This document shows, one piece after another, positions 24,901-64,000 of a stretch of DNA of 64,000 nucleotides. The notes under the pieces are model-generated. The model was not told the DNA's origin. It did no database searches and worked only from the letters and a program-made list of their open reading frames with translations. The position numbers and the translations under genes were made by a program. How positions within the stretch are numbered: position 1 is the stretch's first letter; each line of letters opens with the position of its first letter. Source of the DNA: Auanema rhodensis (taxonomy: Eukaryota > Animalia > Nematoda); NCBI GenBank assembly GCA_964057225.1, contig OZ059895.1:18972001-19036000 (forward strand), in the 5' to 3' direction.

Positions 24901-25159
24901 ATCTGTAGAATTTTCGTCTGTTGTCGATTTTTTTTCGTTTTTTCTCGAACTTCGGATTTTTATGTGATTTTATATATTTTTTATATTATATTTTTTAATT
25001 TAAATTCTATCAATTTATATTTTGAGCTGGTTTTAGTTATGTTTTTAACATTTTTTTTATTGAACACCATAAATATACCTAGTGTATGCAGGTGGCTTGA
25101 ATCTTGAAAGTTTATAAAAATTATGTTTTAGACTTTGTGTTATTGATTCAGTCAAATAG

Positions 25160-28100: not shown

Positions 28101-28228
28101 GTAACAATTCTTGCAAACATGTTAATATTATCATTAATCCAATTTAGGTCTTCAATAAAACGCAACGAGAAAAATTCCGTTGGGCAATAGACATGACCAT
28201 GACTAGTGATGAAGAGTATATCTTCTAA
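25160..28228 (+). CDS. top-1: DNA topoisomerase I (type IB), about 20 exons
   Basis: [76 protein letters not shown], and SKLNYLDPR with the catalytic Tyr. Confidence 0.98.
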
Positions 28229-35300: not shown

Positions 35301-36727
35301 TGGACGGAATGTCTTGACAAAGAACAATTTATTTCTGCTGTAAAAACACTGTTTCTCATTCTTTCTTAAGTTTTTATTTTCTAGCTAAGTCAGTTAATTC
35401 GTTCAATTGCCGAACATCGACCTGATTGGATTGAACAACTCTGGATATGCTTAGCTGAAAAAGCGGAGAGTGAGCATGAACCCATTCGATTGGCAGCGGT
35501 AATTACTGCTTCTGCTTTGATCAAAAAGTAAGTGATTCTATTAGTCATTTGTGATTATAAGTCGTTTTAGTTGTCCTGACTCACAAGGACAGTTTAATGA
35601 GAAGCTACTAATTGAATGCATAAGGCTGCTTCAGAACGAATTGACAGATCAAAGTTTACGCATTAGAAAGGTTAGTTGCTGTAAAATTTTGAATTAAAAC
35701 TGTTTTTAATTTAGTTGTGTCTTCGTGGTCTTGGAGAATTAGCTGACTGTCCTTCTGAAGGTGTAACCAAGAGATTTGCTAGCATGGCTGTTGAGGCAGC
35801 TATGGCTGGATTGGATGATCTAGGAGATCGTCAGGATACGGTATCAAGATATTTATTTTTCGATCCTACCATACTTTGTATTCCTAGGTTGCTATGGAGT
35901 CGATTGTAGCATTGAGTAAGCTTGTTTCTCGGACTAATGACCAGCAATTAACAAGCATATTGCCTCAAGTTCTCTTGAAAGTTCGACCATGCTTTGAAAA
36001 GGTATTCTACAATAATAATAACCGTTGAAATTTTCGTATTTAGGAATCACCCAACTTAAGAGCTGCATGCTTCAGCCTGTTTGGAGAGCTTGGTCATAGA
36101 GTTGGTGAAGGATCTACAGAGTTTTTCAATCATTTACAAACAAACATAGTAACAATATTGCTTCATGCAAATGATGAAAGTGACGATGTCAGAAAGGTAC
36201 AGTATTTATTCAAACTTTGTGCTAAACAATTGTCTTTTAGATGTGCACCTTAGCTCTCTTCCGTGTTCACTCGCTTTTGAATATTGGAATTCTATCTTCT
36301 CTGGTGGAACGAGAGCTTCATGGAGGTCGTCCACCTTCTTCTTACAATTCCTTTATTTCTGATTTTGCTGCTGTTCTGGTATTTGCCTTTGTTTTTAAGA
36401 TTAATATAATGCCCGTTGTTACAGACTTCGTCTTTTCCCGATCGTGTCAACCAGTATGCTCTTACATGCAGTAATTATTTCAAAAGTGCAAGTCCCTGCA
36501 TTCGTTCAAATGCAGCTGTATTAACTGGTAGTTTATTAGCAGATTTATCTCCGCAACTAAGAGCTACGATTAGTAAAGATTTAATCTTCTCAGGTATCAT
36601 GTTTTGAAAATTTCTCAAACTTACTACTTATCTCTTTTCAGGCCTCGTTTTACTTTTAAAAGATGAAGATCTTACTGTTCGTATATCTGCCACAAAAGCA
36701 ATTGCCAGTTTATATGCGTTTTCTTAA
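29393..36727 (+). CDS. hpo-27: Maestro HEAT-like repeat protein (MROH1/HEATR7A; HPO-27-like), about 45 exons
   Basis: Long helical-repeat ORF across many ~50-nt introns. MROH1-like segments include LIINLATQEMT, KNHSEAFRCF, LRHLLNS, LWPYLLEFV, ERQGCARGVG, LRATLMLSYG and CLRGLG. Orthology is from recognition, not a search. Confidence 0.85.
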
Positions 36728-37361
36728 TTTATTTTTCTTTCATTGTATGTATTGTATAGAAACTGTAATTCACTTTTCTTCAAATCTGTGATGATTTTGC
36801 CATTGGATTTTGATTTTTCTGGCTGAAAATTCATTCATAGCGTTTTTTTTTGACGGGAAATCGGATTTTTTTCGCTTTTTTTGAAAAAATCCTAGTAGTT
36901 TCTGATTATGGTTAAGCATATCCTGTTCGTTGTGTTATGAGTCTAGTCTGTGAGATTTTGTTTGCAACCAAAAATGACAAAACTTTTCTAATGACTTGAA
37001 AAATATAAATTTTAAATATCAAATAGCTTGCTGAAATAAAGTTTTAAGATTTCTATTTTTTTAATATTGGAGATAAGAATAAATGACTCTCCGCCTTCTA
37101 ATCGTATTTGAATGATCATTTTATTTAACAACGGGCAAGACACTAAATGAGCAGCATCAGCGGCACCTCGACCATCGACAGCGTTGTCGCAAAATATAGA
37201 AGTACTGATAACAACTAGCTGTTTCTCTCTTATTGATAAACAGACTGACGCATTCCTTTTTGTTTCGTAGAATTGTCACATACGAAAGATTTGAAAAGTA
37301 ATTTTTCCTTTTAACTTCAATTACCGTTTATGCTTTTTTTTGAAAATTGAATGCTTCAGAT

Positions 37362-38754
37362 ATGATTAATTCAGTAATTTTTGGAATTTTTTTCATAGTA
37401 TCTGTATATAGTGATGCAGTGGATAGTGATGCATCATGTATAACAGAATGTTCTGAAGTAGGTTTTATATTCTTAGACTTCAACTATTTCTTTAATCGAG
37501 TTTCGAAATAGTATATAATCATGATTTACTTAAGACTATAATGCCACGCTGTGGTACTTGGCTAACCAGAGAAGACAATGCCAAAGTTGGAGGAACATAT
37601 GAGGTTTTCTTTAAAAGATTTTATCATTTTATTTACTTGATTTATTCTTTTTTTCAGTTGAATAAAGGAGTTTTAAATATGTCTTGTGAATTTTCATCTT
37701 TACCGAAACCTGCTGAAGTTATATGGATGCACAAAGGTGGAAATACAAACAGTTGGAGTACATTCCCATGTTCAACTAAGCTTGAGAACAAAGTTTGTGG
37801 GTGAGATTTGTATATATTCAATTATGTATTTTAAAAAATTAATCAAATTTCATAATTTCATTCATTTTGTACATCTTTGTAATAAGTTTGTATCGTATGA
37901 ATTTCAAGTTTTAAATGCAAATCTACAACATTATATTTAGAATTATTTATAACCTACTTAATTGTATATTTAAGTTTGCTTTTTCTCATTCAGAAGTTCT
38001 GGACATACTGTTGAATCAAGATGCATCTTAAGAACAACAAACTTGAATATGTCTGGAAGTTATCGTTGCCAGGCTGCAACAACCTCGTTTGCAACCGAGA
38101 ATTCTAAAGCTTATGGGTTAGAGCATTAATTTTCAAATTTCCAATAAAGAAGGGGAAATTTCAGTTCAGCATTTGAAGTTGATGTTGTTGGAATCTCTGA
38201 TGTAATAGTTCACAATCATACTTTGATATATAACAAGTTTGGTAATATATTAGTTGAAGTAGGTAGATTTCTGATATTACCTATAGTTAACGTTCACAAA
38301 AGTAATTTATATTTCCAATTTAGTTTGTTAAATGACGTAGCCAATTATTAAAATGTTCAGATTTGTGCAAATCCAAAACCAGAAGTTTTTTGGCTTTCTA
38401 AGAATCACATCATTACTCCTCATGAAGGAAATCATCGCTTAACTGCTACTCATCTTCACCGTCGTCGGGTAAATGTTTTTTCGTCATCATGACCATTAAA
38501 AAATCTTCAAAGTTGAAATATTTTTCATATTTTAGATTCGTCTTGATGCTGTTGGTCCATCAACTATTGTTCCTTATTGTTATATTAGTGAACTATTCAT
38601 TCGTAAAGTTGAATTAGATGATAGTTTCCAACTTTTGATTAAGTCTGATGATATTACTCAAACATACAATTTTGGACTTCGAGTAAAATCTAGCATGTCG
38701 TCTTTCAGCAATTTTATTGGTATCATCATAATGACAATTTTGTTATTGAAATAA
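37362..38754 (+). CDS. Secreted or GPI-anchored two-Ig-domain (ZIG-like) protein
   Basis: Signal peptide MINSVIFGIFFIVSVYS; Ig1 MSCEF..VIWMH..SGSYRCQA; Ig2 ICANPKPEVFW..CYISELFI; hydrophobic C-terminal tail FIGIIIMTILLLK*. Confidence 0.85.
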
Positions 38755-44404: not shown

Positions 44405-47400
44405 TTTTTTGTGAACAAATCTTCTGGATGGGCTCGATATAAACCTTTTTTCCGGAATAAGGAGAAGTCCTAGCCAAATCTCACTAGGAATTTCAGATTC
44501 TACCCATCTGAATACCCAACCTCAGATTATTTTTATTTGATTTTAGTTGATGATCTTAGAGAAAAAGGGACATTCACCGGGCACAACGTGAATAGAGCCT
44601 GAACTTTTTGTGAACAAATCTTCTGGATGGGCTCGATATAAACCTTTTTTCCGGAATAAGGAGAAGTCCTAGCCAAATCTCACTAGGAATTTCAGATTCT
44701 ACACATCTGAATACCCAACCTCAGATTATTTTTATTTGATTTTAGTTGATGATCTTAGAGAAAAAGGGACATTCACCGGGCACAACGTGAATAGAGCCTG
44801 AACTTTTTTGTGAACAAATCTTCTGGATGGGCACGATATAACCTTTTTTCCGGAATAAGGAGAAGTCCTAGTCAAATCTCACTAGGAAATTCAGATTCTA
44901 CACATCTGAATACCCAACCTCAGATTATTTTTATTTGATTTTAGTTGATGATCTTAGAGAAAAAAGGACATTCACCAGGCACAACGTGAATAGAGCCTGA
45001 ACTTTTTTGTGAACAAATCTTAAAGATGGGCACGATATAAACCTTTTTTCCGGAATAAGGAGAAGTCCTAGTCAAATCTCACTAGGAAATTCAGATTCTA
45101 CACATCTGAATACCCAACCTCAGATTATTTTTATTTGATTTTAGTTGATGATCTTAGAGAAAAAAGGACATTCACCAGGCACAACGTGAATAGAGCCTGA
45201 ACTTTTTTGTGAACAAATCTTAAAGATGGGCACGATATAAACCTTTTTTCCGGAATAAGGAGAAGTCCTAGTCAAATCTCACTAGGAAATTCAGATTCTA
45301 CACATCTGAATACCCAACCTCAGATTATTTTTATTTGATTTTAGTTGATGATCTTAGAGAAAAAAGGACATTCACCAGGCACAACGTGAATAGAGCCTGA
45401 ACTTTTTTGTGAACAAATCTTAAAGATGGGCACGATATAAACCTTTTTTCCGGAATAAGGAGAAGTCCTAGTCAAATCTCACTAGGAAATTCAGATTCTA
45501 CACATCTGAATACCCAACCTCAGATTATTTTTATTTGATTTTAGTTGATGATTTTTGAGAAAAAGGGACATTCACCAGGCACAACGTGAATAGAGCCTGA
45601 ACTTTTTGTGAACAAATCTTATGGATGGGCACGATATAAACCTTTTTTCCGGAATAAGGAGGAGTCCTCGCCAATTCTCACTAGGAAATTCAGATGCTAC
45701 ACATCTGAATACCCAACCTCAGATTATTTTTATTTGATTTTAGTAGATGATTTACGAGAAAAAAGGACATTCACCAGGCACAACTTGAATAGAGCCTGAA
45801 CTTTTTTGTGAACAAATCTTCTGGATGGGCACGATATAAACCTTTTTTCCGGAATAAGGAGAAGTCCTAGTCAAATCTCACTAGGAAATTCAGATTCTAC
45901 ACATCTGAATACCCAACCTCAGATTATTTTTATTCATTTTAGTTGATGATTTACGAGAAAAAAGGACATTCACCGGGCACAACGTGAATAGAGCCTGAAC
46001 TTTTTTGTGAACAAATCTTAAAGATGGGCACGATATAAACCTTTTTTCCGGAATAAGGAGGAGTCCTCGCCAATTCTCACTAGGAAATTCAGATTCTACA
46101 CATCTGAATACCCAACCTCAGCTTATTTTTATTTGATTTTAGTTGATGATTTACGAGAAAAAAGGACATTCACCGGGCACAACGTGAATAGAGCCTGAAC
46201 TTTTTTGTGAACAAATCTTAAAGATGGGCACGATATAAACCTTTTTTCCGGAATAAGGAGAAGTCCTAGTCAAATCTCACTAGGAAATTCAAATTCTGCA
46301 CATCTGAATACCCAACCTCAGATTATTTTTATTTGATTTTAGTTGATGATTTTTGAGAAAAAGGGACATTCACCAGGCACAACGTGAATAGAGCCTGAAC
46401 TTTTTTGTGAACAAATCTTAAAGATGGGCACGATATAAACCTTTTTTCCGGAATAAGGAGAAGTCCTAGTCAAATCTCACTAGGAAATTCAGATTCTACA
46501 CATCTGAATACCCAACCTCAGATTATTTTTATTTGATTTTAGTTGATGATTTTTGAGAAAAAGGGACATTCACCAGGCACAACGTGAATAGAGCCTGAAC
46601 TTTTTTGTGAACAAATCTTAAAGATGGGCACGATATAAACCTTTTTTCCGGAATAAGGAGAAGTCCTAGTCAAATCTCACTAGGAAATTCAGATTCTACA
46701 CATCTGAATACCCAACCTCAGATTATTTTTATTTGATTTTAGTTGATGATTTTTGAGAAAAAGGGACATTCACCAGGCACAACGTGAATAGAGCCTGAAC
46801 TTTTTTGTGAACAAATCTTAAAGATGGGCACGATATAAACCTTTTTTCCGGAATAAGGAGAAGTCCTAGTCAAATCTCACTAGGAAATTCAGATTCTACA
46901 CATCTGAATACCCAACCTCAGATTATTTTTATTTGATTTTAGTTGATGATTTTTGAGAAAAAGGGACATTCACCAGGCACAACGTGAATAGAGCCTGAAC
47001 TTTTTTGTGAACAAATCTTAAAGATGGGCACGATATAAACCTTTTTTCCGGAATAAGGAGAAGTCCTAGCCAAATCTCACTAGGAATTTCAGATTCTACA
47101 CATCTGAATACCCAACCTCAGATTATTTTTATTTGATTTTAGTTGATGATTTTTGAGAAAAAGGGACATTCACCAGGCACAACGTGAATAGAGCCTGAAC
47201 TTTTTTGTGAACAAATCTTAAAGATGGGCACGATATAAACCTTTTTTCCGGAATAAGGAGAAGTCCTAGTCAAATCTCACTAGGAAATTCAGATTCTGCA
47301 CATCTGAATACCCAACCTCAGATTATTTTTATTTGATTTTAGTTGATGATTTACGAGAAAAAAGGACATTCACCAGGCACAACGTGAATAGAGCCTGAAC

Positions 47401-50400
47401 TTTTTTGTGAACAAATCTTAAAGATGGGCACGATATAAACCTTTTTTCCGGAATAAGGAGAAGTCCTAGCCAAATCTCACTAGGAATTTCAGATTCTACA
47501 CATCTGAATACCCAACCTCAGATTATTTTTATTTGATTTTAGTTGATGATCTTAGAGAAAAAAGGACATTCACCGGGCACAACGTGATTAGAGCCTGAAC
47601 TTTTTTGTGAACAAATCTTCTGGATGGGCACGATATAAACCTTTTTTCCGGAATAAGGAGAAGTCCTAGTCAAATCTCACTAGGAAATTCAGATTCTACA
47701 CATCTGAATACCCAACCTCAGATTATTTTTATTTGATTTTAGTTGATGATTTTTGAGAAAAAGGGACATTCACCAGGCACAACGTGAATAGAGCCTGAAC
47801 TTTTTTGTGAACAAATCTTAAAGATGGGCACGATATAAACCTTTTTTCCGGAATAAGGAGAAGTCCTAGTCAAATCTCACTAGGAAATTCAGATTCTACA
47901 CATCTGAATACCCAACCTCAGATTATTTTTATTTGATTTTAGTTGATGATTTTTGAGAAAAAGGGACATTCACCAGGCACAACGTGAATAGAGCCTGAAC
48001 TTTTTTGTGAACAAATCTTCTGGATGGGCTCGATATAAACCTCTTTTCCTGAATAAGGAGACGTTCTAGCCAAATCTCACTAAGAAATTCAGATTCTACA
48101 CATCTGAATAACCAACCTCAGATTATTTTTATTTGATTTTAGTTGATGATTTTTGAGAAAAAGGGACATTCACCAGGCACAACGTGAATAGAGCCTGAAC
48201 TTTTTTGTGAACAAATCTTAAAGATGGGCACGATATAAACCTTTTTTCCGGAATAAGGAGAAGTCCTAGTCAAATCTCACTAGGAAATTCAGATTCTACA
48301 CATCTGAATACCCAACCTCAGATTATTTTTATTTGATTTTAGTTGATGATTTTTGAGAAAAAGGGACATTCACCAGGCACAACGTGAATAGAGCCTGAAC
48401 TTTTTTGTGAACAAATCTTCTGGATGGGCTCGATATAAACCTCTTTTCCTGAATAAGGAGACGTTCTAGCCAAATCTCACTAAGAAATTCAGATTCTACA
48501 CATCTGAATAACCAACCTCAGATTATTTTTATTTGATTTTAGTTGATGATTTACGAGAAAAAAGGACATTCACCAGGCACAACGTGAATAGAGCCTGAAC
48601 TTTTTTGTGAACAAATCTTAAAGATGGGCACGATATAAACCTTTTTTCCGGAATAAGGAGAAGTCCTAGCCAAATCTCACTAGGAATTTCAGATTCTACA
48701 CATCTGAATACCCAACCTCAGATTATTTTTATTTGATTTTAGTTGATGATCTTAGAGAAAAAAGGACATTCACCGGGCACAACGTGATTAGAGCCTGAAC
48801 TTTTTTGTGAACAAATCTTCTGGATGGGCACGATATAAACCTTTTTTCCGGAATAAGGAGAAGTCCTAGTCAAATCTCACTAGGAAATTCAGATTCTACA
48901 CATCTGAATACCCAACCTCAGATTATTTTTATTTGATTTTAGTTGATGATTTACGAGAAAAAAGGACATTCACCAGGCACAACGTGAATAGAGCCTGAAC
49001 TTTTTTGTGAACAAATCTTAAAGATGGGCACGATATAAACCTTTTTTCCGGAATAAGGAGAAGTCCTAGCCAAATCTCACTAGGAATTTCAGATTCTACA
49101 CATCTGAATACCCAACCTCAGATTATTTTCATTTGATTTTAGTTGATGATCTTAGAGAAAAAAGGACATTCACCGGGCACAACGTGATTAGAGCCTGAAC
49201 TTTTTTGTGAACAAATCTTCTGGATGGGCACGATATAAACCTTTTTTCCGGAATAAGGAGAAGTCCTAGTCAAATCTCACTAGGAAATTCAGATTGTACA
49301 CATCTGAATACCCAACCTCAGATTATTTTTATTTGATTTTAGTTGATGATTTTTGAGAAAAAGGGACATTCACCAGGCACAACGTGAATAGAGCCTGAAC
49401 TTTTTTGTGAACAAATCTTAAAGATGGGCACGATATAAACCTTTTTTCCGGAATAAGGAGAAGTCCTAGTCAAATCTCACTAGGAAATTCAGATTCTACA
49501 CATCTGAATACCCAACCTCAGATTATTTTTATTTGATTTTAGTTGATGATTTACGAGAAAAAAGGACATTCACCAGGCACAACGTGAATAGAGCCTGAAC
49601 TTTTTTGTGAACAAATCTTAAAGATGGGCACGATATAAACCTTTTTTCCGGAATAAGGAGAAGTCCTAGCCAAATCTCACTAGGAATTTCAGATTCTACA
49701 CATCTGAATACCCAACCTCAGATTATTTTTATTTGATTTTAGTTGATGATCTTAGAGAAAAAAGGACATTCACCGGGCACAACGTGATTAGAGCCTGAAC
49801 TTTTTTGTGAACAAATCTTCTGGATGGGCACGATATAAACCTTTTTTCCGGAATAAGGAGAAGTCCTAGTCAAATCTCACTAGGAAATTCAGATTCTACA
49901 CATCTGAATACCCAACCTCAGATTATTTTTATTTGATTTTAGTTGATGATTTACGAGAAAAAAGGACATTCACCAGGCACAACGTGAATAGAGCCTGAAC
50001 TTTTTTGTGAACAAATCTTAAAGATGGGCACGATATAAACCTTTTTTCCGGAATAAGGAGAAGTCCTAGCCAAATCTCACTAGGAATTTCAGATTCTACA
50101 CATCTGAATACCCAACCTCAGATTATTTTCATTTGATTTTAGTTGATGATCTTAGAGAAAAAAGGACATTCACCGGGCACAACGTGATTAGAGCCTGAAC
50201 TTTTTTGTGAACAAATCTTCTGGATGGGCACGATATAAACCTTTTTTCCGGAATAAGGAGAAGTCCTAGTCAAATCTCACTAGGAAATTCAGATTCTACA
50301 CATCTGAATACCCAACCTCAGATTATTTTTATTTGATTTTAGTTGATGATTTTTGAGAAAAAGGGACATTCACCAGGCACAACGTGAATAGAGCCTGAAC

Positions 50401-50518
50401 TTTTTTGTGAACAAATCTTCTGGATGGGCTCGATATAAACCTCTTTTCCTGAATAAGGAGACGTTCTAGCCAAATCTCACTAAGAAATTCAGATTCTACA
50501 CATCTGAATAACCAACCT
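44405..50518 (+). repeat. 200-bp tandem satellite, about 30.5 monomers
   Basis: Monomer GAACTTTTTTGTGAACAAATC...GTGAATAGAGCCT recurs every 199-200 bp. Confidence 0.98.
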
Positions 50519-50536: not shown

Positions 50537-50881
50537 GAAGAATCGAGGAGAAGCTGAGGAAGAACGGAAGGGTCCACGAGGAAACGAAGAGCCTTGGAAG
50601 AACCGAAGTGCCGAGGTGAAGCTGAGGAAGAACGGAAGAGTCCAGGAGGAACCGAAGAGGCCAGGAAGAATCGAAGAGTGCAGGAGAAAGCGACGAGCAG
50701 AGGAAGAGCCGTAGAGCCGAGGAGGAACCGAAGAGTCCAGGAAAAACCGAAGAGCCCAGGAGAGAGCGACAAGCAGAGGAAGAGCCGAAGAGCCGAGGAG
50801 GAACTGAAGAGTCCAGGAGAAACCGAAGAGCCGAGGAAGAACCGAAGAGTCTAGGATAAACCGAAGAAGCAGAGGAAGAAC
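50537..50881 (+). repeat. Purine-rich scrambled repeat (words GAACCGAAGAG, TCCAGGA, GCCGAGGA), part left of the Maverick
   Basis: Short modules in irregular order; the pattern resumes right after the element. Confidence 0.9.
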
Positions 50882-51141
50882 AGTAGTATACAAAAGGTTG
50901 ACGCTGGCGCACCTTTTTTGCAGATTTTCAACATTTTAAAAACATTTTTTCATCGAAAATCGTACTTAATTTCCCCAAAATGTGTCATTTTTGAAAAATG
51001 ACCAAAATTTGTCTGGCGCACCACTTGAGGACCTTTTTAATTTTAAGTTAACGTCACCACATAGAGCTCAATAAAAGACAAACGGAGAGCACGAAATAAA
51101 TGGATATCGCAAACTACTTAAATATTTTTACACGGCATAAT

Positions 51142-52085
51142 TCAATTGGAATCGGTGGAAGACGTACTATCAGAAGAGGTTGGACAGATGTTCTCAACGA
51201 TGTTTTGAAGAGTTTGCTTGATGTGATCCAGCGCAGAGGATTCGTCAGCGTTCGCCGCCGGACCTATAAAACAAAATAAATACATGTCTGTAATCAAAAT
51301 ATTAAAATGTACAAAGATTTAAAAACTCTATGTAAAATAATATAAAAATACCGAGGTAAGCGAGATCAGCGAGGACGGAAGCGCAATTGCTGAGGTTGCG
51401 GAGTCGATTGAAGAGCAGCTTGAACGACGACATCTTAACAAATTAACATTTAAATATTAAATGGTTATGTATACTCTTGCATTAAGTGTTGTAATTTATC
51501 ATTAAAACAATCGAAAGAAATCATACCTCATTGACGTCAGGCTGGAGAAGAGCTGGAGCAAGATGTCCACGCACTGAAAGAAACTTTGAAAAAATAATTC
51601 TAAAAAGCCTATGAATTTCTCCAATAGCAATATTGTTTACAAAATGTTAAGAGCAAGAAAAAGAAAAGTTTATCCTAACCGGAACGACGCCGCAAGTCAG
51701 TCGTGATTCCTTCAATTGCATTGTAGAGGACCTGGCGGACGACATTACCAGAGTTTGAATCCCACTCCTCCAGCCTAAATGGGTAAACGCTTTATGAGTT
51801 ATATTAAAAGGCAAATGAAGATATAAAATCAATTATCAAAAGCTGATAACTGAATGTTTTTTGAAAAATAGAAATATGCACTCACTTGTCACGGACAACA
51901 CTCACGACTCGATTAAGCAAATGTTGGATAGCGAGAGCTTGATCCTAAAATCATATTTTCAATATAAATACAGTCAAAAAATTTTGTAAGCTCCGTTAAA
52001 GCAATTTACATTCTTTTCCCGCTCAAATTCACTGAATAAATACATCCAAAACTTCAAACAATAATAGGTCAACTTACTGAAACAT
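51142..52085 (-). CDS. Intron-containing cargo gene inside the Maverick; unknown helical 144-aa protein
   Basis: Exons 52085-52078, 52031-52010, 51944-51886, 51774-51680, 51573-51527, 51433-51352, 51263-51142. All are GT-AG and phase-consistent: MFHEFEREKNDQALAIQHLLNRVVSVVRDKLEEWDSNSGNVVRQVLYNAIEGITTDLRRRSVRGHLAPALLQPDVNEMSSFKLLFNRLRNLSNCASVLADLAYLGPAANADESSALDHIKQTLQNIVENICPTSSDSTSSTDSN*. Exons are GC-richer than introns. The start codon is the least certain part. Confidence 0.78.
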
Positions 52086-52325
52086 ATCGACGAGCCATCA
52101 TATGTCTACTAGCCTTCTACGTGCGATATGTAAAAATAGTCAAACAGTTCGATATTAAATTACGAACTCCAGAATTAATAAAATCTCTCGAAATAGTCAT
52201 AGGAAAAGGAAAATTCATAGTTGGAAGTCTCTCGGCTTCCTCTGCGTCTCTGCTCACGCGTCACTCTCATCACCCTTCCACTCTGGACCAACCTCAGGTA
52301 AGGTAGCCATGTTTGGGGTTCATGG

Positions 52326-52475
52326 CTAGGTGGAAGTGAATTCACTTTCTAGTGAACACATCCATTTTCTACGAACTTCATCTCTTTTCATTTTCTTATT
52401 TCCTCCGGGTCTTGCAGATCCTGTTGAATTTAAAGAAAGATTTTGGAAACTATCTTCTTGAGTAATTTCTTTCAT
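52326..52475 (-). CDS. 49-aa internally deleted inverted copy of ORF 53021-53311
   Basis: MKEITQEDSFQNLSLNSTGSARPGGNKKMKRDEVRRKWMCSLESEFTST*; the first 25 aa are identical to the + strand ORF. Confidence 0.5.
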   Translation of the reverse strand: MKEITQEDSFQNLSLNSTGSARPGGNKKMKRDEVRRKWMCSLESEFTST

Positions 52476-53095
52476 TTATAAATAAATTACTTTTTCAATA
52501 ATGCCTTCCATAATCATAGAATCGAAGACCTTTGGAAATCATAGATCCTCCGGATTGATAGAAATTTATGATCCCAAGAAAAGGAATGAAATTGTACAAT
52601 CATTCTTGAATCTATGATTTCCAAAGGTCTTCGAGGGGCTGGTATCGTTTCGCCAGCGGGAGTGCTCTATCCCAAATCCGGGGGGTCTGGTGGGGTATCC
52701 CCCCCAGATAGAGAGAGCTTCAACAAAATTTTAAAGTATTAAAAGTATCAGAGAGAGCACTCCCACTCGCAGAGATGAGACTCTTTATTTTCAGGTAAAA
52801 AACGCATGCGCTCTAATGTTAACTCTTAGGGGGGGGGGGTGGGCGAAACGATACCAGCCCCTCGAAGACCTTTGGAAATCATAGATTCAAGAATGATTGT
52901 ACAATTTCATTCCTTTTCTTGGGATCATAGATTTCTATCAATCCGGAGGATCTATGATTTCCAAAGGTCTTCGATTCTATGATTGCGGAAGGCATTTTTG
53001 AAAAAATAATTTATTTATAAATGAAAGAAATTACTCAAGAAGATAGTTTCCAAAATCTTTCTTTAAATTCAACAGGATCTGCAAGACCCGGAGGA
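52401..53095. repeat. Internal inverted repeat of the Maverick: 254-bp arms, 187-bp spacer, nested hairpins
   Basis: 52401-52654 is the near-perfect reverse complement of 52842-53095. Confidence 0.95.
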
Positions 53096-53311
53096 TCTGT
53101 AAGACATTCACCTGGTGAAGGTAGTGAAGGATTCGAAGAAGATTTAAAGAAAATGAAAAGAGATGAAGTTCGTAGAAAAGTTGCAATGATTGGAAGTGAA
53201 TTGAGAAAATACATTCTTAAATCCAAAGAAATCCAAACTATGAGAAAACAAGAAATGGTTGATTTCATTATGAAGTTTAGAGACATTACTTTCGCTGAGT
53301 GTGAAGTTTAG
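53021..53311 (+). CDS. Small intronless Maverick ORF with a Rho_N/HeH-like nucleic-acid-binding motif
   Basis: LKKMKRDEVRRKVAMIG...IQTMRKQEMVDFI resembles the Rho N-terminal helix-extension-helix pattern; TAAATG start context. Confidence 0.55.
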   Translation: MKEITQEDSFQNLSLNSTGSARPGGSVRHSPGEGSEGFEEDLKKMKRDEVRRKVAMIGSELRKYILKSKEIQTMRKQEMVDFIMKFRDITFAECEV

Positions 53312-53396
53312 ATTTTTCTTGAAAAAAATTTTTCTATATAAAAAGGAAGTGTTGGATCCTTCTAAGGTTTGAAAAAGTAATTATTTTTGAGAAATA

Positions 53397-53912
53397 ATGG
53401 ATCATTTCAATTCAATGTCAAGAGATGATCTTCGTAAAGAAATCATTAAACTTCTTGATATAATGTCTGGAGGTGTAAAAAGTAAAAGAATCCTCAGTGA
53501 TTATCCGGAAGATCACTTACTTCATAGCACAGAGAATAAGAAAGTTGTCGGAAAATTCAAAGATGAATTGAATGGAAATATTATAACTGAAATAGTTGCT
53601 CTAAAGCCTAAACAATATGCTTTTAAGACTCTAGATGGTGGTGAAACTAAGAAAAGTAAAGGTGTTAAAAAGAATGTTGTCAAGAATGAGTTGACTGTCG
53701 ATGATTATAAGCACAGCCTTTTTAATAAAACTGTTGTAAGAAAGACTCAATATAGTATTAGGAGTGTTAAACACACTATTATCACACAATGTCAGAATAA
53801 AGTAGCTCTCAAAAATGATGAAGTTTCTACAGAACATAAACGTTATATTATTAAAGATAGTCACTCGACAATGGCATTTGGAAATGTCAATATTAAACCG
53901 AATCTTTTATAA
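53397..53912 (+). pseudogene. Truncated, chimeric protein-primed DNA polymerase B (pPolB) C-terminal fragment
   Basis: SDYPEDHLLHSTENKKVVGKFKDE, IVALKPKQYAF, KKSKGVKK, IRSVKH..QNKVAL, KRYI..TMAFG are typical of the Polinton pPolB C-terminus. The catalytic DTDS motif and the exonuclease domain are absent. Confidence 0.88.
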
Positions 53913-54308
53913 AAGAAATAAAACTGCACTTCCGAAGTCTTCTGAAGTCAAGTCAAAAAAGTAACCACAATGATGGGTTCCGAATTTTTGAAATTGAAAT
54001 GTTGAAAGTTCTATTTTTCTATCTTTTCTATCTTTAAGATATTTTATGATTTCTTCTAGTGGATTCAATCCAAAAGAATCAAAATAATAAATATTTTGTT
54101 TATTCTTGGAGTAGCAAACCCAATGAGTTCTTTTATTATTAGAAGAGTCTAGATTGACAATACCTACTTCTTTTTCTTTAATTCCTTCACTCGGCAATTT
54201 GTCTCTCATAAAGATTCCCCGGAAGTTCTTAATCTTTAATAATTCTACTAATTCAATGAGATCATAATTTGTCAGAGGTTTAAGATTTTTGTCGAATCTC
54301 AGATTCAT
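53907..54308 (-). CDS. Adenovirus-type (adenain-like) cysteine protease of Maverick/Polinton
   Basis: FRGIFMRDKLP, GIVNLDSS..THWVCY, YYFDSFG, Q.Q....HCGYF, with His-Asp-Gln-Cys in catalytic order. The region after CGYF may be shortened. Confidence 0.9.
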   Translation of the reverse strand: MNLRFDKNLKPLTNYDLIELVELLKIKNFRGIFMRDKLPSEGIKEKEVGIVNLDSSNNKRTHWVCYSKNKQNIYYFDSFGLNPLEEIIKYLKDRKDRKIELSTFQFQKFGTHHCGYFFDLTSEDFGSAVLFLL

Positions 54309-54529
54309 CACTTAATAGCAGTAAAAACAATAAATACAAATGAAAAATTGAAAGTGGGCAAAATGGGTAAGTGGTGCGCCAGACAAATTTTGGTCATTTT
54401 TCAAAAATGACACATTTTGGGGAAATTAAGTATGATTTTCAATGTAAAAATCTTTTTAAAATGTTGAAAATCTGCAAAATCGCATTTGCGCAAAAAAGGT
54501 GCGCCAGCGTCAACCTTTTGTATACTACT

Positions 54530-55865
54530 AAGAACCGAAGAGTCCAGGAGGAACCGAAGAGCCGAGGAAGAACCGAAGAGTCCAGGAATCACCGAAGAGC
54601 CGAGGAAGAACCGAAGAGTCCAGGATAAACCCAAGAGCCGAGGAAGAACCGAAGAGTCCAGTAGGAACCGAAGCGCTAAGGGAGAGCCGAAAGGTTCAGG
54701 AACAACCAAAGAGCCGTAGAAGAGTCGAGGAAGAACCGAAGAGTCCAGGAGGAACCGAAGAGTCCTGGAAAAACCGAAGAGTCCAGGAGGAACCGAAGAG
54801 TCAGGAGAAACCGAAGAGCCGAGGAAGAAGAGAAGAGTCAGGAGAAACCGAAGAGCCGAGGAAGAAGAGAAGAGTCCAGGAATCACCGAAGAGCCGAGGA
54901 ACCGAAGAGTCCAGGAGGAACCGAAGAGTCCAGGATAAACCGAAGAGCCGAGGAAGAACCGAATAGTTCAGGATAAATACAAGAGCCGATGAAGAACCGA
55001 AGAGTCCAGGAGAAACCAAAGAGCCGAGGAAGAACCGAAGAGCCGAGGAGAAACCGAAGAGTGCAGGAGAAAGCGACGAGCAGAGGAAGAGCCGTAGAGC
55101 CGAGGAGGAACCGAAGAGTCCAGGAAAAACCGAAGAGCCCAGGAAGAATCGAAGAGTCCAGGAGAAACCGAAGATGCAGAGGAAGAGCCGAAGAGCCGAT
55201 GAAGAACCGAAGAGTCCAGGAGAAACCAAAGAGCCGAGGAGGAACCGAAGAGTCCAGGAAAACCCGAAGAGTCCAGGAGAGAGCGACAAGCAGAGGAAGA
55301 GCCGAAGATCCGAGGAGGAACCGAAGAGTCCAGGAAAAACCGAAGAGCCCAGGAAGAATCGAAGAGTCCAGGAGAAACCGAAGATGCAGAGGAAGAGCCG
55401 AAGAGCCGAGGAAGAACCGAAGAGCCGAGGAAGAACCGGAAGAACCGAAGAGTCCAGTAGGAACCGAAGAGCCGAAGAGCCGAAGAGCCGAGGAAGAACC
55501 GAAGAGTCCAGGAGAAAGCGACAAGCAGAGGAAGAGCCGAAGAGCCGAGGAAGAACCGAAGAGTCCAGGATAAACCGAAGAACCGAGGAAGAACCGAAGA
55601 GTCCAGTAGGAACCGAAGAGCCGAGGAAGAAGCGAAGAGTCCAGGATAAACCCAAGAGCGAAAAGGTTCAGGAACAACCAAAGAGCCGTAGAAGAGTCGA
55701 GGAAGAACCGAAGAGTCCAGGAGGAACCGAAAAGACGAGAAACAAGAAGAAGAACCGAAGAGTCCAGGAGGAACCGAATGGTCCAGGAACAACCAAAGAT
55801 CCGAAGAGTCGAAGAAGATCTGCGGAGGAACTGAAAGAGTCCAGGAGAGGCCCAAGAAGTCCGAA
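54530..55865 (+). repeat. Purine-rich scrambled repeat, left block
   Basis: Irregular concatenation of AACCGAAGAG / TCCAGGA / CCGAGGA modules; more degenerate near 55670-55865. Confidence 0.92.
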
Positions 55866-56157
55866 AAATATGATCCTTTGTCCAGAAAGCTTATAGTTCA
55901 GGATATCCGTAGTTCCGAGTTCTGTAAATTTCAAGACTACGAATATATCATGTTTTTTTTAATTCCATACCATGTTTTTTCCCCAGTACTTCGAAGTTTG
56001 AAAAGCGCAGGAGCTGTTGACCGTAATGCCAGCTGTTGCAGTCTTCCTTCTGCAGAACTATCATATAGAAGTTATTTTTTCAGTTGATCTTATGGAATTT
56101 CTGAGAATAAGCTTATAAATGAAAGCTTCAAGTTAAATAATAAATTACCTTGCTCAT
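55668..56157 (-). CDS. Putative 3-exon ORF (about 113 aa) whose last exon runs into the scrambled repeat
   Basis: Exons 56157-56149 (MSK), 56049-55971 (KEDCNSWHYGQQLLRFSNFEVLGKKH) and 55921-55668 (ELGTTDILNYKLSGQRIIFFGLLGP...). Junctions are GT-AG and phase-consistent; TATATAA and TTTCAG lie upstream. No recognisable homology. Confidence 0.4.
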
Positions 56158-57110
56158 TCTGTTGTTTTTCCGCGAGTACGGCAGAGCTGACACAGGACTG
56201 CAGTCTGAAGAGCTCAGAAGCTGTCGACCTATTCGGACGGCGACAGTCGGAGAAATGATTGTCAACTGAAAAAAATTTGCTTATATACCCTTTGACGGAC
56301 AGACCACGTAAACCACGTTTACGTAAGATTTTGAAAATTTCAAAAACAAAAACCGGCTGTACACGATTTGAAAATTACAAGAAATGAAAGAAAATTATGT
56401 AAAATAAATGTTTTAATTCAGATTTTAATCAATTATATTATATTTTTAAAATTATTATATTGTTTTATACTTTTTTATACTGTTTAAAAATATAAAATAA
56501 TTTTATATAATAAATATTGTTAACTGAATAATTGTTTTTCATTTATTTTAAACTGGAAATCATTAATAAACATTTGAATAATTTGAAACATATAAAGATT
56601 AAGATAATTAATTATAATTTAATGATAGAATCAACATAATAATTATTAACAAATGCCTAACCCACTCCTCCTTTATTCTAATTTAGCGCGCTTGTGTGAA
56701 TTTGTTTAATAAATTTTATGCTTAAAAAGTTCTTTAATGATAATGTTTTTGAAAGAAACTATAGGCAGTGCATACGATTAAGCCTAGAATTGTACTTGAC
56801 AGTACTAAATAATTTCTGATATGTTAGACTTACACCCCCCCCCCCCCCCCTTCTTTAATTTTATACATTTGAATCACTCGCACAATCGCTTCTTTTCACA
56901 TAGAAATTTATAGTAAAATTTATATAAATATTGAAATAAAATTGAAAAAGTATTTGTATTTGAATTTTTAATATGATAAATGAATTTTATACATTTGAAT
57001 CCAAGTTATGATGTTTATCAGTGGAGCGCGACTTATCGAGTATTGTATTTTTTCTAGTATAATTTCACTAAAACGTATAATTAGCTGAAATAAATCAAGT
57101 AGTACGGAAC
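55972..57110. repeat. Left arm of the large inverted repeat
   Basis: Near-identical reverse complement of 58337-60098 once the extra tandem units are removed. Confidence 0.95.
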
Positions 57111-57417
57111 TTGTAAATATATAATCGAACCTGTAGAACCAGAAAAACTGACAGAAATTTGAAAATATCGTCATTTCAACAAGATATGACACCTTGAACA
57201 TAGTTCTTCTTAGTGAACCTTTATTGCCTTATGGTTTATATGATATAACGATTTTTTATTTTGTCATATAGTTACCTTTTATATGAAAATGTGGTCAATA
57301 GCCGAAAGGATAAGATGACAGACTGGCACTCCAACGGTCCAAGATCGAATCCCACAGGATACGGATCAGAGCATAAGGTAAGACAAAGATTACAGAGGCG
57401 GCAACGGAACCCGAGGT

Positions 57418-57563
57418 CCAGGAACCCGAAGGCCAGGAATCCGGAAGAAGAGGGCCAGGAACCCGAAGGCCAGGAATCCGGAAGAAGAGGGCCAGGAACC
57501 CGAAGGCCAGGAATCCGGAAGAAGAGGGCCAGGAACCCGAAGGCCAGGAATCCGGAAGAAGAG
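57418..57563 (+). repeat. 37-bp minisatellite, 4 copies
   Basis: CCAGGAACCCGAAGGCCAGGAATCCGGAAGAAGAGGG. Confidence 0.92.
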
Positions 57564-58312
57564 GACCAGAAGCCGAGGAGGACCAGAAGACGCGAGGATC
57601 AGAAGCCGAGGAGGACCAGAAGACGCGAGGATCAGAAGCCGAGGAGGACCAGAAGACGCGAGGATCAGAAGCCGAGGAGGACCAGAAGACGCGAGGATCA
57701 GAAGCCGAGGAGGACCAGAAGACGCGAGGATCAGAAGCCGAGGAGGACCAGAAGACGCGAGGATCAGAAGCCGAGGAGGACCAGAAGACGCGAGGATCAG
57801 AAGCCGAGGAGGACCAGAAGACGCGAGGATCAGAAGCCGAGGAGGACCAGAAGACGGGAGGATCAGAAGCCGAGGAGGACCAGAAGACGGGAGAATCAGA
57901 AGCCGAGGAGGACCAGAAGACGGGAGAATCAGAAGACGCGAGAATCAGAAGCCGAGGAGGACCAGAAGACGCGAGAATCAGAAGCCGAGGAGGACCAGAA
58001 GACGGGAGAATCAGAAGCCGAGGAGGACCAGAAGACGGGAGAATCAGAAGCCGAGGAGGACCAGAAGACGGGAGAATCAGAAGCCGAGGAGGACCAGAAG
58101 ACGGGAGAATCAGAAGCCGAGGAGGACCAGAAGACGGGAGAATCAGAAGCCGAGGAGGACCAGAAGACGGGAGAATCAGAAGCCGAGGAGGACCAGAAGA
58201 CGCGAGGATCAGAAGCCGAGGAGGACCAGAAGACGCGAGGATCAGAAGCCGAGGAGGACCAGAAGACGCGAGGATCAGAAGCCGAGGAGGACCAGAAGAC
58301 GCGAGGATCAGA
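57564..58312 (+). repeat. 33-bp minisatellite (17+16 sub-repeats), about 23 copies
   Basis: GACCAGAAGACGCGAGGATCAGAAGCCGAGGAG, with a block of GGGAGAATC variants. Confidence 0.95.
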
Positions 58313-58336
58313 GGTTTTTCAAGTTTACTATATTTG

Positions 58337-60098
58337 GTTCCGTAATACTTGATTTATTTCAGCTAATTATACGTTTTAGTGAAATTATACTAGAAAAAAT
58401 ACAATACTCGATAAGTCGCGCTCCACTGATAAACATCATAACTTGGATTCAAATGTATAAAATTCATTTATCATATTAAAAATTCAAATACAAATACTTT
58501 TTCAATTTTATTTCAATATTTATATAAATTTTACTATAAATTTCTATGTGAAAAGAAGCGATTGTGCGAGTGATTCAAATGTATAAAATTAAAGAAGGGG
58601 GGGGGGGTGTAAGTCTAACATATCAGAAATTATTTAGTACTGTCAAGTACAATTCTAGGCTTAATCGTATGCACTGCCTATAGTTTCTTTCAAAAACATT
58701 ATCATTAAAGAACTTTTTAAGCATAAAATTTATTAAACAAATTCACACAAGCGCGCTAAATTAGAATAAAGGAGGAGTGGGTTAGGCATTTGTTAATAAT
58801 TATTATGTTGATTCTATCATTAAATTATAATTAATTATCTTAATCTTTATATGTTTCAAATTATTCAAATGTTTATTAATGATTTCCAGTTTAAAATAAA
58901 TGAAAAACAATTATTCAGTTAACAATATTTATTATATAAAATTATTTTATATTTTTAAACAGTATAAAAAAGTATAAAACAATATAATAATTTTAAAAAT
59001 ATAATATAATTGATTAAAATCTGAATTAAAACATTTATTTTACATAATTTTCTTTCATTTCTCGTAATTTTCAAATCGTGTACAGCCGGTTTTTGTTTTT
59101 GAAATTTTCAAAATCTTACGTAAACGTGGTTTACGTGGTCTGTCCGTCAAAGGGTATATAAGCAAATTTTTTTCAGTTGACAATCATTTCTCCGACTGTC
59201 GCCGTCCGAATAGGTCGACAGCTTCTGAGCTCTTCAGACTGCAGTCCTGTGTCAGCTCTGAAGTACTCGCGGAAAAACAAAAGAATGAGCAAGGTAATTT
59301 ATTATTTAACTTGAAGCTTTCATTTATAAGCTTATTCTCAGAAATTCCATAAGAACAACTGAAAAAAATAACTTCTATATGATAGTTCTGCAGAAGGAAG
59401 ACTGGAACAACTGGCATTACGGTCAACAGCTCCTGCGCTTTTCAAACTTCGAAGTCCTTTGACAGCTCTGCCGTACTCGCGGAAAAACAACAGAATGAGC
59501 AAGGTAATTTATTATTTAACTTGATGCTTTCATTTATAAGCTTATTCTCAGAAATTCCATAAGATCAACTGAAAAAATAACTTCTATATGATAGTTCTGC
59601 AGAAGGAAGACTGGAACAACTGGCATTACGGTCAACAGTTCCTGCGCTTTTCAAACTTCGAAGTCCTTTGACAGCTCTGCCGTACTCGCGGAAAAACAAA
59701 AGAATGAGCAAGGTAATTTATTATTTAACTTGAAGCTTTCATTTATAAGCTTATTCTCAGAAATTCCATAAGATCAACTGAAAAAATAACTTCTATATGA
59801 TAGTTCTGCAGAAGGAAGACTGCAACAACTGGCATTACGGTCAACAGCTCCTGCGCTTTTCAAACTTCGAAGTCCTTTGACAGCTCTGCCGTACTAGCGG
59901 AAAAACAACAGAATGAGCAAGGTAATTTATTATTTAACTTGAAGCTTTCATTTATAAGCTTATTCTCAGAAATTCCATAAGATCAACTGAAAAAATAACT
60001 TCTATATGATAGTTCTGCAGAAGGAAGACTGCAACAGCTGGCATTACGGTCAACAGCTCCTGCTCTTTTCAAACTCCGAAGTACTGGGGGAAAAACAT
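58337..60098. repeat. Right arm of the large inverted repeat, including a 4x tandem expansion
   Basis: Reverse complement of 55972-57110. Confidence 0.95.
59253..60082 (+). repeat. About 209-bp tandem repeat, 4 copies, each containing an exon-intron-exon segment
   Basis: The CT(C/A)GCGGAAAAACAA anchor occurs at 59266, 59476, 59685 and 59894; the left arm has a single copy. Confidence 0.93.
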
Positions 60099-62129
60099 TG
60101 TTCCTGGACCTTTCGGCTCTCCCTTAGCGCTTCGGTTCCTACTGGACTCTTCGGTTCTTCATCGGTTCTTGTATTTATCCTGGACTCTTCGGTTCTTCCT
60201 CCGCTCTTCGGTTTATCCTGGACTCTTCGGTTTATCCTGGACTCTTCGGTTCCTCCTGGACTCTTCGGTGATTCCTGGACTCTTCGGTTCTTCCTCGGCT
60301 CTTCGGTTTATCCTGGACTCTTCGGTTCTTCATCGGCTCTTGTATTTATCCTGGAATCTTCGGTTCCTACTGGACTCTTCGGTTTTTCATCGGCTCTTGT
60401 ATTTATCCTCGGCTCTTCGGCTCTTCCTCTGCTTGTCGCTTTCTCCTGGACTCTTCGGTTTCTCCTCGGCTCTTCGGTTCTTCCTCGGCTCTTCGGTTTA
60501 TCCTGAACTCTTCGGTTCCTCCTGGACTCTTCGGCTCTTCGGTGATTCCTGGACTCTTCGCTTCTTCCTCGGCTCTTCGGTTTATCCTGAACTCTTCGGT
60601 TCCTCCTGGACTCTTCGGTTCCTCGGCTCTTCGGTTCTTCCTCGGCTCTTTGGTTTCTCCTGGACTCTTCGGTTCTTCATCGGCTCTTGTATTTATCCTG
60701 GACTCTTCGGTTCTTCCTCGGCTTGTCGCTTTCTCCTGGACTCTTCGGTTTCTCCTGGACTCTTCGGTTTCTCCTGGACTCTTCGGTTCCTCCTCGGCTC
60801 TTCGGTTCTTCCTCGGCTCTTCGGTTTATCCTGGACTCTTGGGTTCCTCCTGGACTCTTCGGTTTATCCTGGACTCTTCGGTTCCTCCTGGATTCTTCGG
60901 TTCCTCCTAGACTCTTCGCTTCTTCCTCGGCTCTTCGGTTCTTCCTCGGCTCTTTGGTTTCTCCTGGACTCTTCGGTTCTTCATCGGCTCTTGTATTTAT
61001 CCTGGACTCTTCGGTTCTCCTCGGCTTGTCGCTTTCTCCTGGACTCTTCGGTTTCTCCTGGACTCTTCGATTCTTCCTGGGCTCTTCGGTTTTTCCAGCA
61101 CTCTTCGGTTCCTCCTCGGCTCTTCGGTTCTTCCTCGGCTCTTCGGTTTATCCTGAACTCTTCGGTTCCTCCTGGACTCTTTGGTTTCTCCTGGACTCTT
61201 CGGTTTCTCCTGGACTCTTCGGTTCTTCATCGGCTCTTGTATTTATCCTGGACTCTTCGCTTCTTCCTCGGCTCTTCGGTTTCTCCTGACTCTTCGGTTC
61301 CTCCTGGACTCTTCGGTTCTTCCTGGCTCTTCGGCTCTTCGGTGATTCCTGGACTCTTCGCTTCTTCCTCGGCTCTTCGGTTTCTCCTGGACTCATCGGT
61401 TCCTCCTGGACTCTTCGGTTTCTCCTGGACTCTTCGGTTCTTCCTCGGCTCTACGGCTCTTCCTCTGCTCGTCGCTTTCTCCTGCACTCTTCGGTTCCTC
61501 CTGGACTCTTCGGTGATTCCTGGACTCTTCGGTTCTTCCTCGGCTCTTTGGTTTCTCCTGGACTTTTCGGTTCCTCCTCGGCTCTACGGCTCTTCCTCGG
61601 CTCTACGGCTCTTCCTCTGCTTGTCGCTCTCTCCTGTGCCTGGTGAATGTCCCTTTTTCTCAAAAATCATCAACTAAAATCAAATAAAAATAATCTGAGG
61701 TTGGGTATTCAGATGGGTAGAATCTGAAATTCCTATTTTTCCTGGACTCTTCGCTTCTTCCTCGGCTCTTCGGTTTCTCCTGACTCTTCGGTTCCTCCTG
61801 GACTCTTCGGTTCTTCCTGGCTCTTCGGCTCTTCGGTGATTCCTGGACTCTTCGCTTCTTCCTCGGCTCTTCGGTTTCTCCTGGACTCATCGGTTCCTCC
61901 TGGACTCTTCGGTTTCTCCTGGACTCTTCGGTTCTTCCTCGGCTCTACGGCTCTTCCTCTGCTCGTCGCTTTCTCCTGCACTCTTCGGTTCCTCCTGGAC
62001 TCTTCGGTGATTCCTGGACTCTTCGGTTCTTCCTCGGCTCTTTGGTTTCTCCTGGACTTTTCGGTTCCTCCTCGGCTCTACGGCTCTTCCTCGGCTCTAC
62101 GGCTCTTCCTCTGCTTGTCGCTCTCTCCT
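60098..62129 (-). repeat. Purine-rich scrambled repeat, right block (inverted orientation)
   Basis: CTCTTCGGTT / TCCTGGA / TCCTCGG modules are the reverse complement of the left block. Confidence 0.92.
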
Positions 62130-64000
62130 GTGCCTGGTGAATGTCCCTTTTTCTCAAAAATCATCAACTAAAATCAAATAAAAATAATCTGTGGTTGGGT
62201 ATTCAGATGTGTAGAATCTGAAATTCCTAGTGAGATTTGCCTAGGACTTCTCCTTATTCCGGAAAACAGGTTTATATCGTGCCCATCCATAAGATTTGTT
62301 CACAAAAAGTTCAGGCTCTATTCACGTTGTGCCTGGTGAATGTCCCTTTTTCTCAAAAATCATCAACTAAAATCAAATAAAAATAATCTGAGGTTGGGTA
62401 TTCAGATGGGTAGAATCTGAAATTCCTAGTGAGATTCGGATAGGACTTCTCTTTTTTCCGGAAAAGAGGTTTATATCGTGCCCATCCATAAGATTTGTTC
62501 ACAAAAAGTTCAGGCTCTATTCACGTTGTGTCTGGTGAATGTCCCTTTTTCTCAAAAATCATCAACTAAAATCAAATAAAAATAATCTGAGGTTGGGTAT
62601 TCAGATGGGTAGAATCTGAAATTCCTAGTGAGATTCGGATAGGACTTCTCTTTTTTCCGGAAAAGAGGTTTATATCGTGCCCATCCATAAGATTTGTTCA
62701 CAAAAAGTTCAGGCTCTATTCACGTTGTGCCTGGTGAATGTCCCTTTTTCTCAAAAATCATCAACTAAAATCAAATAAAAATAATCTGTGGTTGGGTATT
62801 CAGATGGGTAGAATCTGAAATTCCTAGTGAGATTCGGATAGGACTTCTCTTTTTTCCGGAAAAGAGGTTTATATCGTGCCCATCCATAAGATTTGTTCAC
62901 AAAAAGTTCAGGCTCTATTCACGTTGTGCCTGGTGAATGTCCCTTTTTCTCAAAAATCAATAACTAAAATCAAATAAAAATAATCTGTGGTTGGGTATTC
63001 AGATGTGTAGAATCTGAAATTCCTAGTGAGATTTGCCTAGGACTTCTCCTTATTCCGGAAAACAGGTTTATATCGTGCCCATCCATAAGATTTGTTCACA
63101 AAAAGTTCAGGCTCTATTCACGTTGTGCCTGGTGAATGTCCCTTTTTCTCAAAAATCATCAACTAAAATCAAATAAAAATAATCTGTGGTTTGGTATTCA
63201 GATGTGTAGAATCTGAAATTCCTAGTGAGATTTGCCTAGGACTTCTCCTTATTCCGGAAAACAGGTTTATATCGTGCCCATCCATAAGATTTGTTCACAA
63301 AAAGTTCAGGCTCTATTCACGTTGTGCCTGGTGAATGTCCCTTTTTCTTGAAAATCATCAACTAAAATCAAATAAAAATAATCTGAGGTTGGGTATTCAG
63401 ATGGGTAGAATCTGAAATTCCTAGTGAGATTCGGATAGGACTTCTCTTTTTTCCGGAAAAGAGGTTTATATCGTGCCCATCCATAAGATTTGTTCACAAA
63501 AAGTTCAGGCTCTATTCACGTTGTGCCTGGTGAATGTCCCTTTTTCTCAAAAATCATCAACTAAAATCAAATAAAAATAATCTGAGGTTGGGTATTCAGA
63601 TGGGTAGAATCTGAAATTCCTAGTGAGATTCGGATAGGACTTCTCTTTTTTCCGGAAAAGAGGTTTATATCGTGCCCATCCATAAGATTTGTTCACAAAA
63701 AGTTCAGGCTCTATTCACGTTGTGCCTGGTGAATGTCCCTTTTTCTCAAAAATCAATAACTAAAATCAAATAAAAATAATCTGTGGTTGGGTATTCAGAT
63801 GTGTAGAATCTGAAATTCCTAGTGAGATTCGGATAGGACTTCTCTTTTTTCCGGAAAAGAGGTTTATATCGTGCCCATCCATAAGATTTGTTCACAAAAA
63901 GTTCAGGCTCTATTCACGTTGTGCCTGGTGAATGTCCCTTTTTCTCAAAAATCAATAACTAAAATCAAATAAAAATAATCTGTGGTTTGGTATTCAGATG
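62129..64000 (-). repeat. 199-bp satellite in inverted orientation, more than 9 monomers, running off the window
   Basis: Reverse complement of the 44405-50518 monomer. An extra ~98-bp fragment lies at 61635-61734. Confidence 0.97.

Follow-up and report, generated by a model that had tools for sequence, protein, structure and literature searches.

Positions 50882–54529 of the window (the whole 64-kb stretch of Auanema rhodensis DNA that was analyzed) hold a 3,648-bp, internally deleted, Maverick-derived element, recognized by its inverted ends, a published end motif, and the length of its target-site duplication (TSD); within it, on the minus strand of 51142–52101, lies a candidate intron-bearing gene. 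The left terminal inverted repeat (TIR; 50882–51026, plus strand) begins with AGTAGT, and the right one (54369–54529, minus strand) ends with ACTACT on the plus strand. The two arms, about 145 nt in length, were identified by repeat comparison and are separated by four substitutions and one indel, i.e., they differ at about 3 % of sites in addition to the indel, and ends of the form AGTAGT...ACTACT are found nowhere else in the window. The element is bounded by two copies of AAGAAC (50876–50881 on the left and 54530–54535 on the right), which were delimited from the register of the surrounding minisatellite: taking away the element together with one AAGAAC restores the 19-nt register of the latter. 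TIRs, a 6-bp TSD, and an (AGT)2//(ACT)2 end motif are hallmarks of Mavericks, with the motif having been described for vertebrate Mavericks (PMC8097293); the element displays all three of these, along with an adenovirus-type cysteine protease.

The protease is encoded by an ORF of 134 aa (53907–54311, minus strand) with no break seen along its length. It was assigned by way of its relatives and the profile built from them, as the ORF of the window by itself has no Pfam match: a total of 153 relatives were recovered, the Peptidase_C5 family (PF00770) was matched in 17 of the 28 aligned members, and the profile of the relatives matches adenain in the PDB (1avp) at 1.5e-5. The columns with the His, Asp, Gln, and Cys residues are all retained in the copy from the window. 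A second ORF of 171 aa (53397–53912, plus strand) has 46 relatives, most of them from Caenorhabditis and the rest from assemblies, and UniRef gives the name DNA-directed DNA polymerase to two of them. Profile searches of Pfam, the PDB, and PHROGs found no match for this ORF, even by way of its relatives, and on the strength of those two names we consider it a likely piece of a polymerase, a broken gene. This one short piece is free of stops and frameshifts, and the remainder of the polymerase has been lost by deletion. No exact copies of either the 134-aa or the 171-aa ORF were found in the searched collection.

Between the candidate gene and these ORFs is an inverted duplication with outer bounds 52365–53179, delineated by repeat comparison. 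It contains an AT-rich ORF of 96 aa on the plus strand (53021–53311), which is whole, and its shortened mirror copy on the minus strand (52326–52475), both of which lack a Pfam match and have no family assigned; the shortened copy arose by a single inverted duplication. A further block on the plus strand (52221–52297), with a GC content of 0.57, is exon-like in having an AG and a strong GTAAGG donor, and it is oriented divergently from the candidate gene, 120 nt from the ATG of the latter. It may once have belonged, as an exon, to a second cargo gene and have been orphaned when the inverted duplication cut it off. We also considered it as an upstream extension of the candidate gene itself and rejected this, as the phases run into stops and the splice signals of the block are on the other strand. 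No integrase, capsid protein, or packaging ATPase was found, and the 3.65 kb of the element contain no further ORF of at least 100 aa; likewise, no large virus-type ORF is present in the window, and an Rfam search of the whole window returned nothing. Given the lack of an integrase, capsid proteins, and the ATPase, we class the element as a deletion remnant rather than as an intact Maverick. Hence, the proposal of the first-pass annotation that the gene lies inside a Maverick is borne out by the TIRs, ends, TSD, and protease, but what surrounds the gene is a 3.65-kb remnant and not a full element.

Along the minus strand of 51142–52101, GC-rich and AT-rich blocks alternate, and five of the blocks are flanked by an AG upstream and a GT downstream. 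The longest plain ORF in this region has only 61 aa, which explains why the ORF track had missed the gene, as had been stated from the outset. Five exons are common to every workable model, viz., E2 (51886–51944, 59 nt), E3 (51680–51774, 95 nt), E4 (51527–51573, 47 nt), E5 (51352–51433, 82 nt), and E6 (51142–51263, 122 nt including the stop), and they are separated by GT..AG introns of 88–111 nt, with acceptors across the gene that are mostly of the TAG or AAG type. Upon splicing, E2–E6 form a single frame with no internal stops that terminates at the TGA of 51144–51142. The patterns used for scoring nematode splice sites and poly(A) hexamers were textbook sequences. With them, AATAAA is absent within 100 nt of the stop, and the sole poly(A)-like match is an ATTAAA at 101 nt.

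The 5' end is ambiguous, with two models that both splice to an open frame. In the first (model A), the first ATG (52101) serves as the start, and a 24-nt first coding exon (52078–52101) is followed by a 133-nt intron, for a total of six exons and 142 aa. In the second (model B), which is that of the first-pass annotation, it starts from an ATG at 52085 with an 8-nt exon (52078–52085) and a predicted 22-nt micro-exon (52010–52031) that has GT..AG introns on either side and a GC content of only 0.36, for a total of seven exons and 144 aa. Model B leaves two ATGs upstream that would open a short overlapping frame; in model A, an in-frame stop comes directly before the ATG, and acceptor-like AGs occur 4 and 15 nt ahead of the latter. 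We lean toward model A. Thus, the seven-exon, 144-aa structure originally proposed does splice to an open frame but is not the only one to do so, and the six canonical introns claimed for it are GT..AG throughout, with their number being contingent on the choice of the 5' model.

How far such a structure exceeds chance expectation was gauged against control 1-kb windows across the 64 kb, where the longest spliceable ORF under loose splice rules has a median of 95 aa and a 90th percentile of 187 aa. As the controls yield such ORFs often, openness after splicing is weak evidence, and the chain of splice phases by itself has a p of about 0.05. With splice choice being this flexible, the case rests on the GC contrast, the helical signal, and the helix predictions. 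The exons have a GC content of 0.51 against 0.16–0.27 for the introns; the resulting exon–intron contrast of 0.27 is well above that of any control model, none of which exceeds 0.15. A GC step of 0.15–0.47 is seen at 10 of the 10 junctions, and each step falls on the GT or AG of one and the same strand, with the variance in GC of the region as a whole being only at about the 90th percentile of the window. The helical hydrophobic moment of the spliced product stands at z=4.6 relative to shuffles, and in four of the five shared exons (E2, E3, E5, and E6) the spliced frame is, by a wide margin, the one with the top moment on the sense strand; these are also the frames that the splice phases join together. 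E2 has but one open sense frame, with a moment of 1.67, whereas in E4 an alternative open frame is more helix-like than the required one (moment of 1.53 vs 0.54), which could be a chance product of its mere 15 residues; the required frame of E4 is the sole one that links E3 and E5. The strand of the gene is not in doubt since every plus-strand frame of E3 is closed by stops. Taken as a sequence pattern, the gene model is real, and the gene is probably coding and intron-bearing.

The predicted product of 142–144 aa is rich in L, S, A, V, N, and R, with a net charge of about −2. No membrane segment is predicted (maximal 19-residue hydropathy of 0.91), and its N-terminus is not hydrophobic. E2, E3, and E5 each specify an amphipathic helix (in E5 as judged from the splice model and the helical moment), E4 a proline-containing linker with a low moment, and E6 a helix followed by a Ser/Thr/Asp-rich tail, with Ser or Thr at nine of the last 14 residues and Asp or Glu at two of these. 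Single-sequence AlphaFold2 runs on individual exons predict a helix over residues 2–30 of E3 (pLDDT 91.7) and over residues 3–25 of E6, followed by coil (pLDDT 79.6). Together with the moment and the composition of the tail, these exon-level predictions agree with the initial description of an amphipathic helical protein with an acidic and Ser-rich tail. E2, E3, and E6 are also mutually alike at z of about 5. We rejected an origin of this likeness in internal repeats arising from exon duplication: their nucleotide identity is just 0.35–0.42, and the likeness is confined to codon position 2, pointing to a shared amphipathic pattern. No DNA repeats between the exons and no paralogs of the exons were found in the 64-kb window.

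Searches for relatives were run at the level of exons. Neither Pfam nor a PDB sequence search with E3, E5, and E6 separately gave a match or anything credible, respectively, with the 27–39-aa queries affording low power. An exhaustive phmmer search of 1.84 billion representatives with E6, again a short query of low power, recovered no credible relative; its only hit, to an Echinococcus tandem-repeat 'mucin', was discarded as spurious since it sums five weak repeats. The antisense ORF of 59 aa that overlies E6 was also used in a word-based search, aimed at ORFs called on assemblies that lack annotation, and returned nothing. The initial description of the gene as one of unknown family is thus upheld, as a weak negative given the length of the queries.

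The position and structure of the gene closely recall a region known from nematode Mavericks. In these, a stretch of 2–5 kb beside the left TIR combines high GC, low conservation, and intron-bearing genes, and has been interpreted as host-derived cargo exchanged between species, with the 3' end of the cargo facing the TIR in one such element (Widen et al., bioRxiv 10.1101/2022.07.12.499685). The core genes of Mavericks are reported to be intronless. In the present element, the candidate gene has its stop (51142) at a distance of 116 nt from the inner edge of the left TIR, with the 3' end pointing toward that TIR; it lies between the TIR and the core genes, has a higher GC content than the genes of the element, and has predicted introns. 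Such intron-bearing Maverick cargo is already described as a kind, with the wasp proteases and krma kinases reported by Widen et al. being likewise situated beside one TIR, with GC-richer exons, introns, and the 3' end toward the TIR. Members of the cargo families known so far are proteases or kinases that are several hundred residues long and bear a ubiquitin-like N-terminus (Widen et al.). The candidate is unlike them in having 142–144 aa as opposed to, e.g., 430 aa, in being all-helical, and in having no detectable ubiquitin-like N-terminus or catalytic domain; its size and all-helical exons argue against it being a full-length member of the WASP protease or KRMA kinase families. The element as a whole can be compared to the non-autonomous, internally deleted DNA transposons, in which both ends and the TSD are likewise kept and most of the coding capacity is gone, but it differs from such derivatives in that a passenger gene and what appears to be a complete protease ORF are still present. 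Another small protein inside a DNA transposon is MAAP/TLPR-1 of nematode MULEs (Widen et al.), where the class of transposon is different and the likeness is one of situation only.

The composition of the gene sets it apart from both the element and the host. Its exons, with a GC content of 0.51, contrast with 0.29–0.30 for the element ORFs, and its GC3 of 0.52 with 0.22–0.24 for the latter, in keeping with the original observation that the genes of the element are intronless and AT-rich and the candidate is GC-richer and spliced. Two Pfam-supported host exon ORFs have a GC content of 0.37. The introns of the candidate (88–133 nt) were initially described as short and host-like; they are AT-rich and of nematode style, but about twice as long as the crudely modeled host introns (43–53 nt). 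Given that its exons exceed those of the host in GC and its introns exceed the host introns in length, we infer, as the most economical interpretation, that it was captured from a different nematode of higher GC. The capture from a nematode genome envisaged earlier is therefore compatible with the composition, with the source pointing to a GC-richer nematode other than the host. On the coding strand of the host genes in 25000–37500 (plus strand), the sense to antisense counts of acceptor-like hexamers are 15:4 for TTTTAG, 7:2 for TTTAAG, and 7:7 for TTTCAG, a splice signature that differs from the TTTCAG type of C. elegans and suggests that the host probably belongs to a different lineage of nematodes. 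The TAG- and AAG-type acceptors of the candidate agree with this apparent preference of the host.

The first-pass annotation had also taken the intactness of the gene beside a gutted polymerase as a possible sign of selection, which is not supported. At the divergence of the TIRs, the probability that a 429-nt coding sequence and ten splice dinucleotides stay free of disabling substitutions is about 0.6, and the corresponding value for indels is about 0.2 (rough values based on small numbers); survival by chance is hence not improbable. Moreover, the large losses in the element amount to a few deletions and one duplication and not to diffuse decay, so that an intact gene beside a gutted polymerase says little.

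Based on these observations, we propose that the locus contains a small intron-bearing coding gene carried as cargo by a Maverick/Polinton, of which a 3.65-kb shell survives, and we assign this reading a probability of roughly 0.6. Extensive rearrangement of the surrounding element means that the gene could instead be a leftover. In this alternative, to which we give perhaps one chance in a handful or slightly better, what remains would be the dead 3' portion of a cargo gene that was once longer, for instance one of the kinase or protease type, with the 5' portion lost when the element underwent deletion and rearrangement; the ATG would be fortuitous, and the frame would still be open only since little time has passed. 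The ambiguous 5' exon, the missing canonical poly(A) signal, the much greater length of the published cargo proteins (e.g., 430 aa), and the not improbable survival of the frame by chance would all be accommodated by it, as would the disposition of the orphan exon-like block 120 nt upstream on the other strand and of the inverted duplication, which begins 260 nt upstream. Against this, the first ATG opens the frame right after an in-frame stop with acceptor-like AGs just upstream, the product has a coherent layout of four helices and a tail, and the low-powered search with E6 gave no relatives among kinase or protease cargo.

Two other explanations fare considerably worse. That non-coding DNA of uneven GC content yielded the gene model by chance, through flexible splice choice, would fit the finding that spliceable ORFs of at least 140 aa are common under loose rules, the unexceptional p of the phase chain, and a local GC variance that is only at about the 90th percentile; yet, chance would hardly produce a GC contrast beyond the range of the controls with all its steps at the GT and AG of one strand, an amphipathic periodicity specific to the spliced frame and correctly linked by the phases, and confident helices for E3 and E6, rendering this account improbable. 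Slightly more improbable still is that we are dealing with an accessory or core gene of the Maverick itself that happens to carry introns. Its location within the inverted ends would be as expected, and Mavericks do hold several small ORFs with no assigned function, such as the 96-aa ORF of this element, but the composition of the gene is opposite to that of the element ORFs, and the reportedly intronless state of core genes speaks against it. Furthermore, relatives of the element ORFs number in the tens to hundreds (153 and 46) in the same databases in which E6 has no credible one, which argues against an ordinary core gene.

Returning to the cargo reading, the gene is best described from its sequence and setting as a probable Maverick cargo gene for which no family was found. 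The surviving shell would consist of the two TIRs, the cargo region, the protease ORF, the polymerase-like stub, and a small ORF of which a part is also present as an inverted duplicate, and would have inserted in the minisatellite with a 6-bp duplication. The gene would have been acquired from the genome of a GC-richer nematode, moved with the element in the manner of nematode Maverick cargo, and might be expressed now or have been so until recently. Its predicted product would be a soluble protein of about 142–144 aa, with neither a signal peptide nor a membrane segment, in which four amphipathic α-helices (one for each major exon) are combined with a linker that contains proline and with a disordered tail rich in Ser, Thr, and Asp. 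Having no catalytic signature, such a protein might act by binding partners as a helical bundle, with the tail as a likely phosphorylation or regulatory segment; the roles of toxin, antidote, or anti-silencing factor suggested earlier are speculation.

For gene transfer from one animal species to another, no vehicles are better documented than nematode Mavericks, with just two cargo families characterized, and a further type of cargo, provided that it is expressed and that several species share it, would broaden our view of the genes moved by Mavericks. In that event, the locus would also offer a compact 3.65-kb case in which both the ends and the insertion site are clean, and in which the history of a cargo could be traced by sequence and distribution alone. 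A bolder and unlikely extension is that the gene is the first example of a third class of Maverick cargo that has not been described before, namely a small helical binding protein kept in a miniaturized element with only the ends, a protease, and a passenger. If so, it would seem to be the passenger and not the virus-like machinery that persists, for example, as a selfish or host-modulating factor. A decaying leftover, on the other hand, would be an ordinary fossil.

The right third of the window is rich in repeats and is framed by a satellite pair, with a 200-bp satellite (about 31 copies, 96 % matches) at 44405–50518 and its inverted counterpart, in 199-bp units, at 62129–64000. The GC-rich 19-nt minisatellite that hosts the insertion of the Maverick remnant occupies 50544–50881, 54530–55799, and 60130–62110, twice in plus and once in minus orientation, and gives long spurious ORFs in several frames. 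A palindrome at 56075–59367 has arms of about 1 kb with 99–100 % complementarity around 33- and 37-nt tandem repeats and contains a 363-aa ORF that is a translation of the repeat; it is followed by a 209-bp tandem array at 59213–60082. Elsewhere in the window, host exons encode a DNA-binding fragment of topoisomerase I (25964–26455, plus strand; PF02919, 2e-39) and MROH-like HEAT repeats (31159–31548, plus strand; PF23210, 9e-9).
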